Part shown: positions 3,835 through 64,000 of the stretch, in pieces
Layout: every line of letters begins with the position of its first letter
Position numbering within the stretch: the first letter of the stretch is position 1
Virus record (IMG/VR): IMGVR_UViG_3300021520_000002
Location: 186,001-250,000 of that record
Reading direction: 5' to 3' (one strand)
DNA: 64,000 nucleotides
Translations under genes and position numbers: made by a program
Notes under the pieces: generated by a model
Seen by the model: only the letters and a program-made list of their open reading frames with translations
The model's database searches: none
What the model was told of the DNA's origin: nothing

Positions 3835-3861
3835 TATATTAATTTCTATATGAAAAAGAAG

Positions 3862-4010: not shown

Positions 4011-4058
4011 TACTATATTAATTTCTATATCAAATCTTTGAATAACAAAAAGGCGGAG

Positions 4059-5079: not shown

Positions 5080-5113
5080 TTATATTAATTTCTATATGAA
5101 AAACTTGAAAATA

Positions 5114-6404: not shown

Positions 6405-6570
6405 GTACTATATTAATTTCTATATGATCTTTTTGAATATACAAAAATCTTGCAGATATATAGAAATAATAGCCTATACAAAAATGGGTGGAGAAAGAAC
6501 CCCTTATTAAGTCTTCCATAGGCTGGAATTGTTATTAAGGTGCCTATGTTCTTTCCCCACAAATTAGAAA

Positions 6571-9495: not shown

Positions 9496-10648
9496 CATTT
9501 GTGTTAATCTAAGATCGCGACTCTTAGACTTCTTCTTTTAAAATAAATAAAAGAAGAACCCATAGTTACCTATGGGATCAGACTATATCATCATCCTATT
9601 ATTTTCCTAAAAATTGTTCAAATAATTTAATATTATTCCATTTTTCATTTATTTCATCATTTTTTGATTCATTTTCAGTTTTTGATAATGGTCTAAGATT
9701 TTTTAATGACCAACATTTTTCAAAATTTGAATCTTCAAACGATTTGATATTAAAAGCTATTATTGGAACAATATGATCAATAACCCAATAATTACCATAA
9801 TTATTCCAATTCATTTTATCATCAAACTGTTTTTCAAGATGTTTCATAAGATCAGTAAGATTATATCCAACAAATTTTAACCAACTTTTTCCTTCTTTTT
9901 TACCTTTTAATATTCCCCAAATAGCTCTACTTACAAGTTTTCTTAATCTAAAAGAAGGATCTGTTTTGTATTTATTTTTGATGTATTCTTTTTTCTTTTC
10001 CATTATTTTATCTTTATTATTTTCAAAATATTTTCTATCTTGTTCTCTTTTTTTCTCTGGATGTTCTTTATAATAAGTTTTTTGTTTAGCTAAAAGTTCG
10101 TTTTTATTTTCTTCCCAATGAGCTTTTCGTTCATCCTGATGTTCTAAACAGTAATTTTTATGATATTCAACTCTTTCATCTTTGTGTTTTTCATAATATC
10201 GGTCAGTTTGAGCTTTATGTTTATCAGGATGATTTTTTCGATATTCTTTTACATTCAGATAATCACAAGGTTTACAATAATATTTATATTTTATTGTACC
10301 GTTTTTTGTTTTATATGCTGGAAATTCAATAATATCTTTTTCTTGTCCACATTTACCTCTACAAATTCTTGTTTTCATAATTTTATTATTCCTCCTAGAA
10401 ATTATTAAATGATGATATAGTCTAATTTAATAATTTCTATATAAGAATCTTAATTACTAAATAATAGGATGCCTCGCGCTTCCGTCCGCTTGGACGTACT
10501 CCCTTTCGGGATAGTCGTTACACCTTCAGTTAATATAGTTCGCAGCTATATTAAAAGCTTGGCTCGGTATTGTCCTATTTCTAGGAGTTTCACCGAATTC
10601 ACGAGGTTATTCGAATATCATTACTGATATAAGCCGCTTAATAGATTA
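9496..10648 (-). mobile_element. Group I self-splicing intron (1153 nt) with homing endonuclease in the P8 loop
   Basis: 5' splice U.G pair in P1 (CCGU/GCGG); P10 CUAUU/AAUAG; core elements GAAUUCGGUGAAA, AAUACCGAGCCAAG, GUAACGACUA, GAUAUAGUCU; P8 CAUCCUAUU/AAUAGGAUG; omega-G at 9496; removal restores frame. Confidence 0.9.
9599..10378 (-). CDS. Intron-encoded HNH homing endonuclease
   Basis: N-terminal Cys motifs; WVIDHIVP...NLRPL...NESKND; own SD and promoter motif at 10433. Confidence 0.88.
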   Translation of the reverse strand: MKTRICRGKCGQEKDIIEFPAYKTKNGTIKYKYYCKPCDYLNVKEYRKNHPDKHKAQTDRYYEKHKDERVEYHKNYCLEHQDERKAHWEENKNELLAKQKTYYKEHPEKKREQDRKYFENNKDKIMEKKKEYIKNKYKTDPSFRLRKLVSRAIWGILKGKKEGKSWLKFVGYNLTDLMKHLEKQFDDKMNWNNYGNYWVIDHIVPIIAFNIKSFEDSNFEKCWSLKNLRPLSKTENESKNDEINEKWNNIKLFEQFLGK

Positions 10649-12690: not shown

Positions 12691-12721
12691 TATATTAATT
12701 TCTATATGAAAAACTTAAAAA

Positions 12722-32532: not shown

Positions 32533-33621
32533 TCTAACCTCTTTATCTCTTCTCTTGCTTTTTCAACCCATTTTTTACATTCTTCAGTAAACTTGTCTTC
32601 ATCTTCTTCATCATTATTAACATTTGGATAGTCAATTATTATTTTTTGTGCGATGCTATGTCCAACTTCAAATATATTTAAATTTAAAACATCATCGAAT
32701 AAATAATTAGTTATACCTTTAATAGAATTGTCAACTTCATTATCTTCAATTTCATCTTCAATAGCTATAAAAAGTTTCATTTTAAAAAGTTTCATTTTTC
32801 CTCATATTTTAAACTTAATTGTTGTTTTTCAAAATTTATTGTTGTCTTAATCATACCTATTAATCTTCTAGAAGTTTCTTTTATATATGCTCCATCAACA
32901 AAAATTATTTCACTGGTTCCATTTCTAGTTACAGAAACTTCAAGATTACAATTTTCAAAAAGTTCAATAATTTCTCCTTCAACTTCATAAACTTTATAAT
33001 GACCCATCGATTCATTTCCTACTAACCAAGAAATAAGTGGCACATAAATATCCCATTTATTTTTGAGACAAAATAAACCTTTTTGATCAAAGTCACCATA
33101 GTTTCCTTCAACTCTATAAAACATTTTATATCTCCTTTTCTCCTCTGATAAAAAGGGACAAAGAACCAAATTCTCTATCCCTTTCAGATTTAACTATTAT
33201 TATTTCTATCAATAACAAATATATATGGTGTACACATACTTTCATCCCAGTTAAGTTGTATACCTTTAACATCTTCTGGATCAAAATTTTCTTCTTTTAA
33301 ACATTCATTAATATTAATTTCTAAATCATTACCAATGTTTGGTGTTCTTTTTGGGAGTAAAATTTTTATTTTTGACATTATTAACTTTCTTCTGTTCCAC
33401 ACATTGTTTTAACAGCAGCTTTCAAAAGAGTAGAAGCTGTTTTAACACCGGAATCAAATCCAGCTGAAAACACCATATCTATCAATTTTGTAAATTTTTC
33501 AGTATTTATAGTGCTTTCATTTCCTGGATCTTCATTACAAATAGTTTCAACTTCTTTTAAATATTTTTCTTGTTCATGTTCTTTAAACTTTTTTATTTCT
33601 GATTCTTTTAACGTAATCATT

Positions 33622-46141: not shown

Positions 46142-46435
46142 TTAAAGTAACCTTAATTTAGAAAATATTTTTTCATTATCAACAGTAGTTGCTAATGATG
46201 TGATTTGATTTCCTATATCAGGTTCTTTAAATATACTATATTCAATACTTTTCATATCCAGCTTAAATATCCATTTTTCTAATTCTTCTTCATCATTAAC
46301 ACCAAGATAAACTAATGTACCATTATCCCAAGATGTTTTATTATGAAGAAGATATTCAGCAACAGCATGACCAGATTGAACAGCTTGTTGGGCTATCGAT
46401 AAATCACGCCGCGTTAGCACATAAAGCTTCTTCAT
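46142..46435 (-). CDS. Peptidyl-tRNA hydrolase, Pth2-like, start revised to MKKLYV
   Basis: LYVLTRRDLS..QQAVQSGHA...F.EPDIGNQITSLA...FSKLRLL. Confidence 0.8.
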   Translation of the reverse strand: MKKLYVLTRRDLSIAQQAVQSGHAVAEYLLHNKTSWDNGTLVYLGVNDEEELEKWIFKLDMKSIEYSIFKEPDIGNQITSLATTVDNEKIFSKLRLL

Positions 46436-58149: not shown

Positions 58150-58920
58150 TTTATTATTTCTATAAATAAATAGAAATTTTATTTTAAAAAGAAAAGATCA
58201 AGAAAAGTTCAGGAGTCTACCATTTAAGATAGACTCCTGATTTGTACATCAACCATTTTCCATTTTTTGTATAAAATTTTATTTTTAAATAATATTTCAA
58301 ATTAAAATCTTTTTAATTAGTTCAATGAACTGGGTACCATGTTACAGAATAACTACTTTCCATTTAGCCCTTCCTCCTTTTTTGAGTTTTGCTACATTCA
58401 ATTATTTCTATATTAAATAACTGAATATACAAATTAATTTCTATATGAAATGATTAAATATTAACTTTATTTGAACTGAATAATTTCAACTTTTTAAATA
58501 TAAAGTTTAAATTAATCTGAACAATATGTATATAGAATTGAATAAGAAAAAATAATGTTCATCTTTAATATAGAAATAATACTCAAAAAGAAAAAGTGGG
58601 AAGGGATAAAAAAAGTAATGGTTATAAAGAGTAAGTCAATAATGTTGTTCATGTCTATCAACATTAACTATACTCTTCCATATAAAACTTCGATTGTTAT
58701 TATCTGTAGATTCGACTGCCATGCTATCCTTTCTTTAAGAAACAGATTCAGAAAAGAACCAAAGAATTTCAGTAATTTCTATTTGAAGATACAGATAAAA
58801 GATTCAACTTCAAAATCATTTGGTTAGGAATTTCAAAAACTATTCCTTAATTTATTTACGGCCGGCGCGCGAGCTAAAAATAGTAAAAATAATTTTTCTA
58901 TTTTCCTATAGAAATAATAA
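58150..58920. promoter_or_regulatory. Divergent promoter region; ATATAGAAAT motif on minus strand at 58156, 58404, 58437 and on plus strand at 58568, 58907
   Basis: Motif orientation flips where gene orientation flips. Confidence 0.7.
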
Positions 58921-59956: not shown

Positions 59957-61651
59957 ATGGATATAGAAATAAATAATATGCATGTTTTTGTTAGTAACTA
60001 TTCTTTTACCGGAGTAGTTAAAACATCACTTGTAAAGGATTTTCATTTATTAAAACTTAAAATTGAATTTTTTAAAATTTTAAGTAATGATAGTAAAATA
60101 ATTTCAATGATATCAAAGACTTGTCAAGAAGATCCAAGAAACGGTAACTCTTTAGGACTTGTAAGTACAAAAGTTGATTATGAAAAAGTTTTGAATTTTT
60201 ATGATGCGGAAGAATTTAGAAATTATTTGCATTTTATAACGGCAAGACCATTCTTAGATGATAAAGTTAATGGTCAGTTATGGACAATTGAATTTAAATT
60301 TCAGAATGATGTACATTATTATAAGGTGTTATTAAGTACAAATGAAGTGTTAAGATTATATAATGTTGTTAATTCTTATTATTCTCTTTATTTTGCTTTA
60401 GATTTTATTGTAAAAGAACATTCAAATCTAGCTCCAGTAGAAAAAGTTGAAGAGAAAAAAATAACAGAATATATTCCAAGCAGAAAAGAAGTTGTTGAAG
60501 AAAAATTTGAAGTTAAGGAGAGAAATGGAACAGATGATATTTTTGAATTATGTTTAACAAATTCAATTAAGTCAAGCTTGATTCATTATACAACCAATTA
60601 TTTTAAATTCTTTTCATCAGAACATTGTAAGATTGTTACTAATGATCAGAAGACACAAATTAAAGTAGTTTGTCCGATATTAATTCCTGGAAAGTTTAAT
60701 ATTGATGAGAACTATTTTAAATCTTTAATTGTGACATCATCATTACATTTGGATAGTATAACTTTTACAATTAAGAAGATTTTATCTTTGCTATTACAGA
60801 GTTATGATAAATATAATAATCCTCTACATTTAATGATGATTAGTTATTTATTATTTGTATATATGTTAAGATATATTTATGATGTGAACAGAGATATATT
60901 TAGAGATTATTTTACTAAATTTATTTGTGTTCCAGAGATGCAGAGACATTTAATTATGAATTTAATTCGTAATAATTTTTCGGATTATCACAATAAAATC
61001 TTCTTTGATTTTATAGCTGTTAATCCTCAGGATATTATGAATGAACAGACAAATAAAGAAATAAACACATTTTCTGAAACTTATAAACATCTTCTTCCGA
61101 TTTCACAAGAAGAATTTGCCGATAAAGTATTCAATAGTCTTAATGGTCAAAATAAAAAATTTCCTGTTGACTTTAAAATAGCCAACAAGAAAATGATAGA
61201 CATTAAAAATCTATTTGAAGAGAAACCAAAACAAACATTACAATCAAAATTGTTTGATTATGAAGGAACATTAGATACAACAGCTGGAATATTTAATGAA
61301 TATACTTTTTTAAATTATACAAAGAATAATGGAAGTAAAATTATAAGTAAAACATATAAACATCTTTTAGATTATATTCAGAATCCATCTTCTCTTCTAT
61401 TAATGAATGAAAAAGATGTGCCAAAAGATGTTCTTAATTTATTTGATTTACTTTCAAAATCAGTTCTAAATACAGAGAAATTAGCTAAGGATAATATATC
61501 AACATTAAATTATTATAATATATTAGTTGAATCTTTGCCGAATGCAAATTTATTTAAACATACAACTTTATTATATGTTGTATATCAAATCATGGTACCT
61601 TATTATTATGATGTCTATGGTACAACACAATTTTATGATAATTTTTTATAG
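59957..61651 (+). CDS. Large hypothetical protein, start revised to MDIEIN
   Basis: SD GGAGG after promoter motif at 59925. Confidence 0.75.
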   Translation: MDIEINNMHVFVSNYSFTGVVKTSLVKDFHLLKLKIEFFKILSNDSKIISMISKTCQEDPRNGNSLGLVSTKVDYEKVLNFYDAEEFRNYLHFITARPFLDDKVNGQLWTIEFKFQNDVHYYKVLLSTNEVLRLYNVVNSYYSLYFALDFIVKEHSNLAPVEKVEEKKITEYIPSRKEVVEEKFEVKERNGTDDIFELCLTNSIKSSLIHYTTNYFKFFSSEHCKIVTNDQKTQIKVVCPILIPGKFNIDENYFKSLIVTSSLHLDSITFTIKKILSLLLQSYDKYNNPLHLMMISYLLFVYMLRYIYDVNRDIFRDYFTKFICVPEMQRHLIMNLIRNNFSDYHNKIFFDFIAVNPQDIMNEQTNKEINTFSETYKHLLPISQEEFADKVFNSLNGQNKKFPVDFKIANKKMIDIKNLFEEKPKQTLQSKLFDYEGTLDTTAGIFNEYTFLNYTKNNGSKIISKTYKHLLDYIQNPSSLLLMNEKDVPKDVLNLFDLLSKSVLNTEKLAKDNISTLNYYNILVESLPNANLFKHTTLLYVVYQIMVPYYYDVYGTTQFYDNFL

Positions 61652-62610: not shown

Positions 62611-62928
62611 ATGAAAGAATTAAATGATGATAATTTTGCTGAAGAAGTATATACAACTAAAAAACCAATATTAATTGAGTTTATGGCTCAATGGTGTGTA
62701 GTATGTAGAGAATTTGATAAGAAATTGGAACAACTAAAAAAAATTTATGGTGATAAAGTTGTGTTTGCAAAAGTTGATATAGATGAGAGTTTTAGATTAT
62801 CATCTGGATTTAATATTGATAAATTACCAACATTTATTTTATACTATAAAAGAGAACCTATGAACTTTATTATTGGAGCGGCAAATTTGTCAGAATTTAA
62901 AACTGCTATTGATGAAGTTATAAACTAG
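62611..62928 (+). CDS. Thioredoxin (WCVVC)
   Basis: FMAQWCVVC, AKVDID, LPTF. Confidence 0.88.
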   Translation: MKELNDDNFAEEVYTTKKPILIEFMAQWCVVCREFDKKLEQLKKIYGDKVVFAKVDIDESFRLSSGFNIDKLPTFILYYKREPMNFIIGAANLSEFKTAIDEVIN

Positions 62929-62959
62929 CTAATACCTCTTTCCATTTTTTCTCCTTCCT

Positions 62960-62990
62960 TAGGGGTGATAGCTTTTCCACTATCACCCTA
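62960..62990. terminator. Hairpin between convergent transcription units
   Basis: TAGGGGTGATAG/CTATCACCCTA. Confidence 0.5.
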
Positions 62991-62992
62991 CT

Positions 62993-63169
62993 TTAAACAA
63001 ATAAAAAACTGGCATTACGTTCTCGATATGAGTCGCGTAATGCCAATTTGTTTTGTTTTCTGTTGTAGCCCTTCTTCCCCTTTTTAGAGGTTTGAGGTCC
63101 ACCATGTGAAGAGATATAAAGGACTTCCTCAACAATTCGCCGATGTTTCAGTTTCTTTTCTTTTTTCAT
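62993..63169 (-). CDS. ArfA/BrfA-like alternative ribosome-rescue factor candidate (58 aa)
   Basis: Not in ORF track. SD GGAGG; MKKEKKLKHRRIVEEVLYISSHGGPQTSKKGKKGYNRKQNKLALRDSYRERNASFLFV; terminator before the stop codon. Confidence 0.6.
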   Translation of the reverse strand: MKKEKKLKHRRIVEEVLYISSHGGPQTSKKGKKGYNRKQNKLALRDSYRERNASFLFV

Positions 63170-63344
63170 AATTATCCTCCATTATCATTTTACTTACAAT
63201 TGCACATTTATGTTTTTGAACTAAACGAAATTCTTTATGAACTTCTTTGTGTATTTTAGTAGTTTTCTTTTTTTGAGAAAAACTAACATAAATAACTTTT
63301 GGTTTAGGAGTCCAATCTATTATTTCTTCCTCTTCTTCAATCAT
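63129..63344 (-). CDS. Hypothetical protein
   Basis: G-rich SD; follows promoter motif at 63379. Confidence 0.5.
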   Translation of the reverse strand: MIEEEEEIIDWTPKPKVIYVSFSQKKKTTKIHKEVHKEFRLVQKHKCAIVSKMIMEDNYEKRKETETSANC

Positions 63345-63481
63345 GTATCCCCCTTTTTTATAGTTTTATAAATATATTATTTCTATATTAAAATGAAGAA
63401 AAAACAAAAGGGTCAAGATTTCATGAGCGCGCCCCTTTGCGATACTTCAATCCATATAACCTCCTTGGCCACTAGGCCATT

Positions 63482-63694: not shown

Positions 63695-63756
63695 GTTCTC
63701 CTCCTAGAGTTTTTTGTTACTTTATTATTTCTATATGAAATCTTTAAAAATAAAAA

Positions 63757-63898
63757 CAAACAAAATTTTCATATGATACGAATATCACATGAAAATCTTG
63801 CCGGTAGAACAATTTCTTAAACCAGCAAGTGGTTCAGAACAGGAACATCTACAGCCTACTGTAGCGTCCTTCAACTAAAGGTTACCCTTTAATCTATA
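63757..63898 (-). ncRNA. Putative structured ncRNA (about 140 nt); 3' end of a related unit at 63945-64000
   Basis: Promoter motif at 63906; hairpins TAAAGG/CCTTTA, CTACAG/CTGTAG, AACCA/TGGTT; terminator TTTTCATGTGATA/TATCATATGAAAA plus U-tract. Confidence 0.58.
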
Positions 63899-64000
63899 CT
63901 TATTAATTTCTATATGAAAAGCTTGAATATCAAAAAAAGAAAATAAACAAAGAACTTATGTGATATAAATATCACATAAATCCTTCGCCAGTCGGAGCAA

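Follow-up and report, generated by a model that had tools for sequence, protein, structure and literature searches.

We identified, in a jumbo phage from lake water, a small and very basic gene whose predicted transcription terminator sits inside the reading frame just before the stop codon. This is the design that bacteria use for the backup ribosome-rescue factors ArfA and BrfA. The gene belongs to an undescribed family that is also found in Saccharibacteria, and hence it is a good but unproven candidate for a new rescue factor. The analyzed DNA (the window) is the 64,000-nucleotide stretch at bases 186001-250000 of a 285,572-bp virus record, IMGVR_UViG_3300021520_000002, which is about 95% complete by the estimate of CheckV and recurs in freshwater and lake metagenomes from several years.

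The ORF and Its Internal Hairpin

An earlier note, made from the sequence alone, had described a basic 58-aa ORF with a GGAGG Shine-Dalgarno sequence and the motif KKGKKGYNRK, of which the 3' part folds into a hairpin followed by a U-tract ending a few nucleotides before TAA. This description proved correct in every detail, and all elements were located on the minus strand (Table 1). The 121-nt stretch 62940-63060(-) folded with RNAfold at -40.9 kcal/mol, against -18.8 +/- 3.0 kcal/mol for shuffled sequences (z = -7.3, 0 of 200 shuffles as good), and the hairpin alone was evaluated at about -17 to -20 kcal/mol. Its 10-bp stem contains 5 G-C pairs and is immediately followed by GUUUUUUAUUU, as expected for an intrinsic (rho-independent) terminator. 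The loop of 16 nt is longer than typical, and a simple terminator scan missed the hairpin only because its loop limit was 8 nt. Termination 7-9 nt after the stem would leave the mRNA 6-8 nt short of the stop codon and give a product of 55-57 residues with a net charge of about +12. The note had named mapping of the transcript 3' end as a check of this point; we sought such evidence in three lake metatranscriptomes from samples that hold the phage, which contained no contig over the gene. A feature not mentioned in the note is that the same hairpin is followed on the plus strand by the T-rich tract ATTTGTTTTGTTTTCTG, so that it could also terminate the convergent thioredoxin gene.

Table 1. Positions of the features in the window.
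Position (strand)	Feature	Observation
63374-63390 (-)	Promoter-like motif TAATATAGAAATAATAT, a variant of a phage-wide motif	At the head of the small transcription unit; function as a promoter is inferred
63129-63344 (-)	Upstream 71-codon ORF of unknown function	Overlaps the first 41 nt of the rescue-factor-like ORF; no significant Pfam, NCBIfam or PHROG match; not in this position in L002
63176-63180 (-)	Shine-Dalgarno sequence GGAGG	6 nt upstream of the ATG
62993-63169 (-)	58-codon ORF plus TAA (protein P0001)	Very basic small protein
63056-63085 (-)	Motif KKGKKGYNRK	Residues 29-38; most conserved block of the family (G31, G34, Y35 and R37 are >=90% conserved)
63011-63046 (-)	Terminator hairpin inside codons 42-53	Arms TGGCATTACG (63046-63037) and CGTAATGCCA (63020-63011); 10-bp G+C-containing stem; 16-nt loop with a 3-bp inner stem; extendable by A-U pairs to 63050-63007
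62996-63009 (-)	U-tract GUUUUUUAUUUGUU	Translated as S-F-L-F-V in the last 5 codons; predicted transcript 3' end at about 63003-63001
62993-62995 (-)	TAA stop codon	Predicted to lie beyond the transcript end
62963-62988 (-)	Second 10-bp hairpin just after the stop	No U-tract on either strand; role unknown; a hairpin with a changed sequence lies at the same place in L002
62584-62928 (+)	Convergent thioredoxin gene	Pfam Thioredoxin, E 9.2e-22; may share the ORF-internal hairpin as a bidirectional terminator; same synteny in L002-L004
46054-46128	CUA-anticodon tRNA	Next to the PTH2-like ORF
46196-46429	Weak PTH2-like ORF	17.6 bits, below the cut-off of 23

Two other features near the gene were rejected. 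Promoter-like hexamers at 63199-63171 overlap the Shine-Dalgarno sequence, and were hence not taken as the promoter. A sub-threshold Rfam hit to the Moco riboswitch at 62922-63065 (26.8 bits against a cut-off of 36) was ascribed to the two adjacent hairpins.

The Gene Family and Its Distribution

A phage relative found on 22 metagenomic contigs (protein P0002; three of the contigs were read as the loci L002-L004, where L with a number denotes a locus carrying the gene) keeps the ORF at 88% amino-acid identity and in the same synteny. Between the two, pS is 0.53 and pN is 0.087, giving a pN/pS of 0.16 with saturating synonymous change. Within the hairpin, only loop positions differ between the window and L002, although the synonymous divergence elsewhere is 0.53. 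An exhaustive profile search found 155 cluster representatives at E<=1e-3 (34 at <=1e-10), nearly all of which are 40-90 aa. The possibility of a spurious ORF was rejected on the basis of pN/pS and family size. The consensus of the family is MKKKK..RLPxEAVxxLRxxGGA[HQ]S[ST]KKGK[KR]GY[ND]RKxEK, and none of the members carries a Pfam domain or a functional name. Pfam, NCBIfam and PHROG scans of the ORF itself gave nothing meaningful, the best being PHROG 9898 of unknown function (E 0.046). Searches of the phage collection with the ORF (DNA and tblastn) and with the family member P0085 gave no relatives. The ESM Atlas gave only leads, namely DUF7230 at a score of 0.90 and one viral cluster in which 16% of members carry ArfA; DUF7230 was not confirmed by a Pfam scan of 149 members.

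An AlphaFold2 model of P0001 (mean pLDDT 81, pTM 0.35) predicted a helix at residues 13-22 (IVEEVLYISS), a Gly/Lys loop at 23-36 and a helix at 37-56, with a basic stretch at 28-52. Foldseek comparison of this model with the PDB gave no match, which says little for a model of two helices and a loop.

The nearest cellular homologues (47-53% identity) lie beside the rny and HU genes. The RNase Y next to one of them is 90% identical to that of a Candidatus Saccharibacteria MAG, G001, which itself carries the gene. The family is patchy and rare even among Saccharibacteria, since 3 of 61 relatives of G001 and 5 of 401 genomes in the phylum sample have it. G001 has tmRNA, SmpB and two full-length release factors that we take to be RF1 and RF2, while no ArfB-sized RF-1-domain protein or RqcH was found in this incomplete genome.

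Position of the Terminator in Homologous Genes

Absence of a pre-stop terminator from homologues had been named in advance as evidence against the proposal, and we read the 3' ends of 22 distinct genes. A stable hairpin plus U-tract upstream of the stop was present in 11 of them (the window, L002, L005, L007/L013, L029, L030, L031, L032, L014, L036 and L037), and 2 were borderline (L033 and L016). The stop codon lies inside the hairpin in 6 (L019, L025, L026, L022, L034 and L035), and no overlapping terminator was found in 3 (L020, L023 and L024). L036 and L037 were chosen because of their Phe-rich tails, and the unbiased count is therefore 9 of 20. The design is thus conserved in the closest homologues and in several other clades, but about half of the family members have their stop codon inside or before the hairpin, so that it is clade-specific rather than a family-wide requirement.

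Three features argue for function rather than compaction. The hairpin sequences are unrelated between clades, with at least six classes, yet the predicted transcript end always falls 19-24 residues after the motif Tyr. Beyond the U-tract the ORFs run on for 0-37 unconserved codons; in L029, L030, L031, L014, L036 and L037 these number about 12-37, and differ in length and sequence even between proteins that are 80-90% identical upstream. The apparent C-terminal "motif" (AFLF, SFYFC, VYFC, CFFYF and similar) is simply the translated U-tract. Such a Phe-rich tail was observed 17-25 residues after the Tyr in 47 of 154 representatives, and both cases then checked at the DNA level were internal terminators.

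Comparison with ArfA, BrfA and ArfT

E. coli ArfA (PF03889; YhdL), which was read from the genome record, has KKGKGSYMRK at residues 33-42, closely matching KKGKKGYNRK at 29-38 of the phage protein, with the Tyr at nearly the same position (Tyr39 against Tyr35). The KGKGS block is the conserved mRNA-channel element of ArfA (10.1101/465609; PMC5378476); for the phage protein only the sequence was compared, and occupancy of the channel was not examined. Two family members, P0078 and P0085, have exactly KKGKGSY, and P0117 has KKGRGSY. A hydrophobic N-terminal segment followed by a Lys/Arg-rich part is the layout described for ArfA (PMC5378476) and is also seen here, and the mature sizes are similar (52-55 aa for ArfA, about 55-57 aa predicted here). 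In arfA a hairpin before the stop codon likewise gives a non-stop mRNA, and hydrophobic residues encoded after the hairpin are not part of the mature protein, which ends at Tyr39+13 to +16 (PMC8012679; PMC5378476). E. coli arfA however relies largely on RNase III cleavage, whereas a plain intrinsic terminator is present here. The Gly-Gly-x-[QH] block before the motif has no counterpart in ArfA, and the Pro23, Leu-Phe-Arg and Lys-His features of ArfA are absent. ArfA is reported only from beta- and gamma-proteobacteria (PMC11633108), whereas the present family is in Saccharibacteria, unassigned metagenomic bacteria and a jumbo phage.

The profile and structure comparisons that the note had proposed for establishing kinship were weak or negative where they were made. 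The Pfam ArfA model (gathering score 25.5 bits) gave no hit at E<=10 to the phage protein or in a six-frame search of the whole phage genome, NCBIfam gave no hit to the phage protein, and BLASTP against E. coli ArfA gave no alignment. Only 3 of 149 family members, those with KKG[KR]GSY, hit the ArfA model, at 14.8-19.7 bits (E 6e-4 to 0.02) and over profile positions 27-42 only, which is the motif alone. Profile-profile comparison with hhalign gave probabilities of 2-11%. Against enterobacterial ArfA it aligned the two families collinearly over 32 columns (P 0.0026), while enriching the ArfA profile with eight phage ArfA homologues made the match weaker (P 0.005-0.019 over 18-20 columns). The motif is Lys/Gly-rich and could be convergent or coincidental. 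We therefore do not file the protein under ArfA; it may be a very distant relative or a convergent solution, and common ancestry, which was not shown, is considered rather unlikely.

BrfA (YqkK) of Bacillus subtilis is the closest match in gene design. A rho-independent terminator lies inside its ORF 9 codons before the stop, giving a non-stop mRNA and tmRNA-dependent degradation, with the product seen only without SmpB (PMC6881298). BrfA is a small basic protein with an N-terminal helix, and a C-terminal helix plus basic tail in the mRNA channel (PMC6881298). It is confined to Bacillus and close relatives, and its authors describe no KGKGS-type motif and report no obvious sequence similarity to ArfA. 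Similarity to BrfA, for which two N-terminal helices and a conserved Arg25 contacting H69 were the features considered, was sought only through searches of PDB chains at E<=10 with the protein and the family profile. These returned nothing relevant, only chance TetR matches at E about 0.5. The same kind of search does find ArfA chains with an ArfA query, but we did not confirm that the chain of entry 6SZS, which holds BrfA (PMC6881298), was among those searched, and the result thus speaks neither for nor against kinship with BrfA, whose sequence was not aligned directly. ArfT of Francisella tularensis, also not aligned, is a very small basic protein of 40 aa with a KKGGSTNKK block resembling the ArfA motif, and is release-factor dependent (10.1101/465609). 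It has a normal stop codon and no internal terminator, and is restricted to Francisella.

True ArfA homologues are already known in cultured phages, namely pelagiphage HTVC027P gp30, Salmonella phage Arash gp99c, Pseudomonas phage pf16, Pseudoalteromonas phage J2-1, Citromicrobium phage RXM, Erythrobacter phage XM05, Ralstonia phage RsoM2USA and Roseobacter phage CRP-212. Of these, HTVC027P gp30 is reported as highly expressed during infection (PMC12753301). They are recognizable ArfA family members (LFRxRxEKxKKGKGSYRR), and in the seven phage copies inspected the stop codon is not preceded by a terminator. The Pseudomonas "phage Y3" record, which has an ArfA-type hairpin before its stop codon, looks like host-type arfA. 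A phage with a rescue factor is therefore not new, but a separate family with the non-stop design, shared with Saccharibacteria, is new as far as the libraries and literature searched show.

Proposed Function and Alternative Explanations

The note had interpreted the ORF as an ArfA/BrfA-like backup rescue factor tuned to tmRNA status and complementing a Pth2/suppressor module, an interpretation that our analysis supports in part. That the ORF is a real, conserved gene for a small basic protein, that a strong intrinsic-terminator structure precedes its stop codon, that this arrangement recurs across clades, and that an ArfA-type motif is present were all demonstrated from the sequences. The remaining steps are inferred: it is likely that the transcripts are non-stop, somewhat less likely though still probable that the protein level is gated by tmRNA, and about as likely as not that the protein rescues non-stop ribosomes with a release factor. 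Neither tagging by tmRNA-SmpB nor peptidyl-tRNA hydrolysis and synthetic lethality with loss of trans-translation was assayed here.

We propose that the protein works like ArfA and BrfA, as a release-factor-dependent backup rescue factor. Transcription from the promoter-like motif would stop at the terminator inside codons 42-57, so that the mRNA lacks the stop codon, and ribosomes translating this mRNA would stall at its 3' end. By analogy with arfA and brfA, the product would be tagged and degraded while host tmRNA-SmpB has spare capacity. When trans-translation is saturated or disabled, for example when infection or a nuclease-based defence produces many truncated mRNAs, the untagged product would accumulate, and its N-terminal amphipathic helix is speculated to recruit a host class-I release factor to free the peptide and recycle the ribosome. 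As the codons downstream of the U-tract show no conservation, the position of the stop codon is not under selection, but the hairpin is. The phage most likely acquired the gene from, or shares it with, bacteria, and the nearest cellular copies are in Candidatus Saccharibacteria.

Among the alternatives, none is favored over this proposal. The protein may be a small basic ribosome- or nucleic-acid-binding protein with another role, such as a ribosome-associated or hibernation-type factor or an RNA chaperone, with the overlap of its 3' end and a terminator reflecting genome compaction. The stop codons lying inside or before the hairpin in about half of the DNA-verified members, the lack of a Phe-rich tail in about 70% of the representatives, the absence of a significant match to ArfA or any solved structure, and the location of the bacterial copies next to rny and HU are compatible with this reading. 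Compaction does not, however, explain why ORFs read 13-37 unconserved codons past a conserved hairpin and U-tract, nor the fixed distance from the motif Tyr, and the ArfA-type motif is the best-conserved block of the family; we regard this reading as unlikely. Less likely still, the hairpin may be simply a shared bidirectional terminator of the ORF and thioredoxin gene, with premature termination as an incidental cost or with read-through mRNA yielding a functional 58-aa protein. The U-rich tracts on both sides, the convergent arrangement in L002-L004, and the ability of a closely coupled ribosome to suppress a terminator within or just after an ORF (PMC4824070) are in line with it. Against it, bacterial homologues with quite different neighbors keep an ORF-internal terminator (downstream genes lie on the same strand in L005, L029 and L030, and on the opposite strand in L031 and L032), and the last residues (FLFV, FYFC, AFLF) are only translated U-tract and are not conserved as protein.

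A leader or attenuator peptide controlling read-through into downstream genes is very unlikely. In L029 and L030 a gene on the same strand starts within a few nucleotides of, or overlapping, the unused stop codon, but in the phage and its relatives nothing lies downstream on that strand, and the protein sequence, not only the RNA, is under purifying selection across a large family.

Release-factor-dependent backup factors are known from only three narrow groups, ArfA in beta- and gamma-proteobacteria, BrfA in Bacillus and ArfT in Francisella, and the discoverers of BrfA predicted that many bacteria hold unidentified ones. It is possible, though slightly less likely than not, that the present family is a fourth, so far unrecognized, spread patchily through uncultivated bacteria including Candidatus Saccharibacteria, captured by a freshwater jumbo phage, and wired to tmRNA in many lineages through an ORF-internal terminator. 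In the phage it would act as a sensor and actuator that appears only when host trans-translation is overwhelmed during infection or nuclease-based defence, and that keeps ribosomes available for phage protein synthesis. A basic small ORF with a terminator 19-24 codons after a KKGKxGYxRK motif would then be a general signature for finding such factors. A family of about 155 clusters combining the channel-binding motif of ArfA with the non-stop gene design of brfA would widen the known range to candidate-phyla-radiation bacteria and to a phage, and offer a natural test of whether the non-stop, tmRNA-gated circuit evolved repeatedly. For phage biology, it suggests that some large phages monitor and compensate for the state of host ribosome rescue.

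Phage Context

The phage encodes no tmRNA above threshold, no SmpB and no release factor, and any such factor would therefore have to work with host components. The functional link that the note proposed with the Pth2/suppressor-tRNA module, represented by the CUA-anticodon tRNA and the weak PTH2-like ORF, is inference only and was not examined. The gene sits in a short unit headed by a variant of the motif TCATATAGAAATTAATA, which occurs 11 times in the window against 0.6 expected. Ten of the 11 are on the minus strand, often just after a terminator-like hairpin, and in L002 the same motif lies directly in front of the homologous gene.

Promoter-Like Motif and Hairpins in the Window

The 17-nt motif TCATATAGAAATTAATA was found 11 times in the window against 0.6 expected, of which ten copies were located on the minus strand and one on the plus strand. 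The motif typically lies just downstream of a terminator-like hairpin and upstream of a Shine-Dalgarno sequence and start codon, and is probably a phage-specific promoter class. A variant of this motif heads the unit studied here. Two near-identical 20-bp hairpins with T-tracts, which look like terminators, are each followed by the promoter-like motif. Since 36-nt pieces around 63720–63755 and 63901–63936 also matched several other contigs of the same metagenome, this is a repeated intergenic cassette.

A second 10-bp hairpin of unknown role lies immediately after the stop codon of the studied ORF and has no U-tract on either strand, and a hairpin with a different sequence was observed at the same place in L002, a locus of a phage relative. 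On the minus strand, this second hairpin is followed by GGAAGGAG, 7 nt, and then ATG and a mini-ORF of 6 codons, which is 12 codons in L002. A sub-threshold Rfam hit to the Moco riboswitch (26.8 bits against 36, E 6.5e-4) spanned both hairpins, which we judged to be a structural coincidence. The first 41 nt of the studied ORF are overlapped by a 71-codon ORF with an acidic N-terminus and a basic middle, for which no family match was obtained. In the relative L002, the promoter-like motif instead directly precedes the rescue-factor-like gene.

Elsewhere in the window, a tRNA with a CUA anticodon, which would read UAG, was detected. This was called tRNA-Pyl by ARAGORN and gave 66 bits with the Rfam tRNA model, although whether the phage recodes TAG was not examined. 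It lies next to an ORF with a weak match to PTH2 (peptidyl-tRNA hydrolase 2) of 17.6 bits, which is below the cut-off of 23.

Positions of the additional features (window coordinates unless a phage is named)
Feature	Position	Strand
17-nt promoter-like motif	3837–3853, 4016–4032, 5083–5099, 6411–6427, 10428–10444, 12693–12709, 33312–33328, 58432–58448, 63722–63738, 63901–63917	−
17-nt promoter-like motif	59959–59975	+
Motif variant heading the studied unit	63374–63390	
20-bp terminator-like hairpin	63759–63802	−
20-bp terminator-like hairpin	63946–63989	−
Second 10-bp hairpin, after the stop codon	62963–62988	
Sub-threshold Moco riboswitch hit	62922–63065	−
71-codon overlapping ORF	63129–63344	−
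tRNA with CUA anticodon	46054–46128	−
ORF with weak PTH2 match	46196–46429	−
ArfA-type ORF, Salmonella phage Arash	57934–58158	

Family Members and ArfA-Type ORFs of Cultured Phages

In the Saccharibacteria-type bacterial loci (L005, L029, L031, and L032), the gene lies within about 1–2.6 kb of rny (RNase Y), and in L005 and L031 it is also located next to an HU gene. It is the last of a run of small same-strand ORFs of unknown function. Two family members, P0013 and P0014, carry an extra N-terminal extension of about 30 residues (MK.EK.YWFV.QW.ESNGLDIGY..) of unknown meaning, which is fused to the conserved core.

Clear ArfA-type ORFs (..LFRxRxEKPKKGKGSYRR..) are carried by cultured phages, namely Salmonella phage Arash, Pseudomonas phage pf16, Ralstonia phage RsoM2USA, Roseobacter phage CRP-212, and Erythrobacter phage XM05. 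Some of them are mis-annotated, as “ribosomal protein L2” in Arash, while others are labeled hypothetical, as in XM05. In pf16, RsoM2USA, and CRP-212, the ArfA-type frame is not annotated as its own gene.
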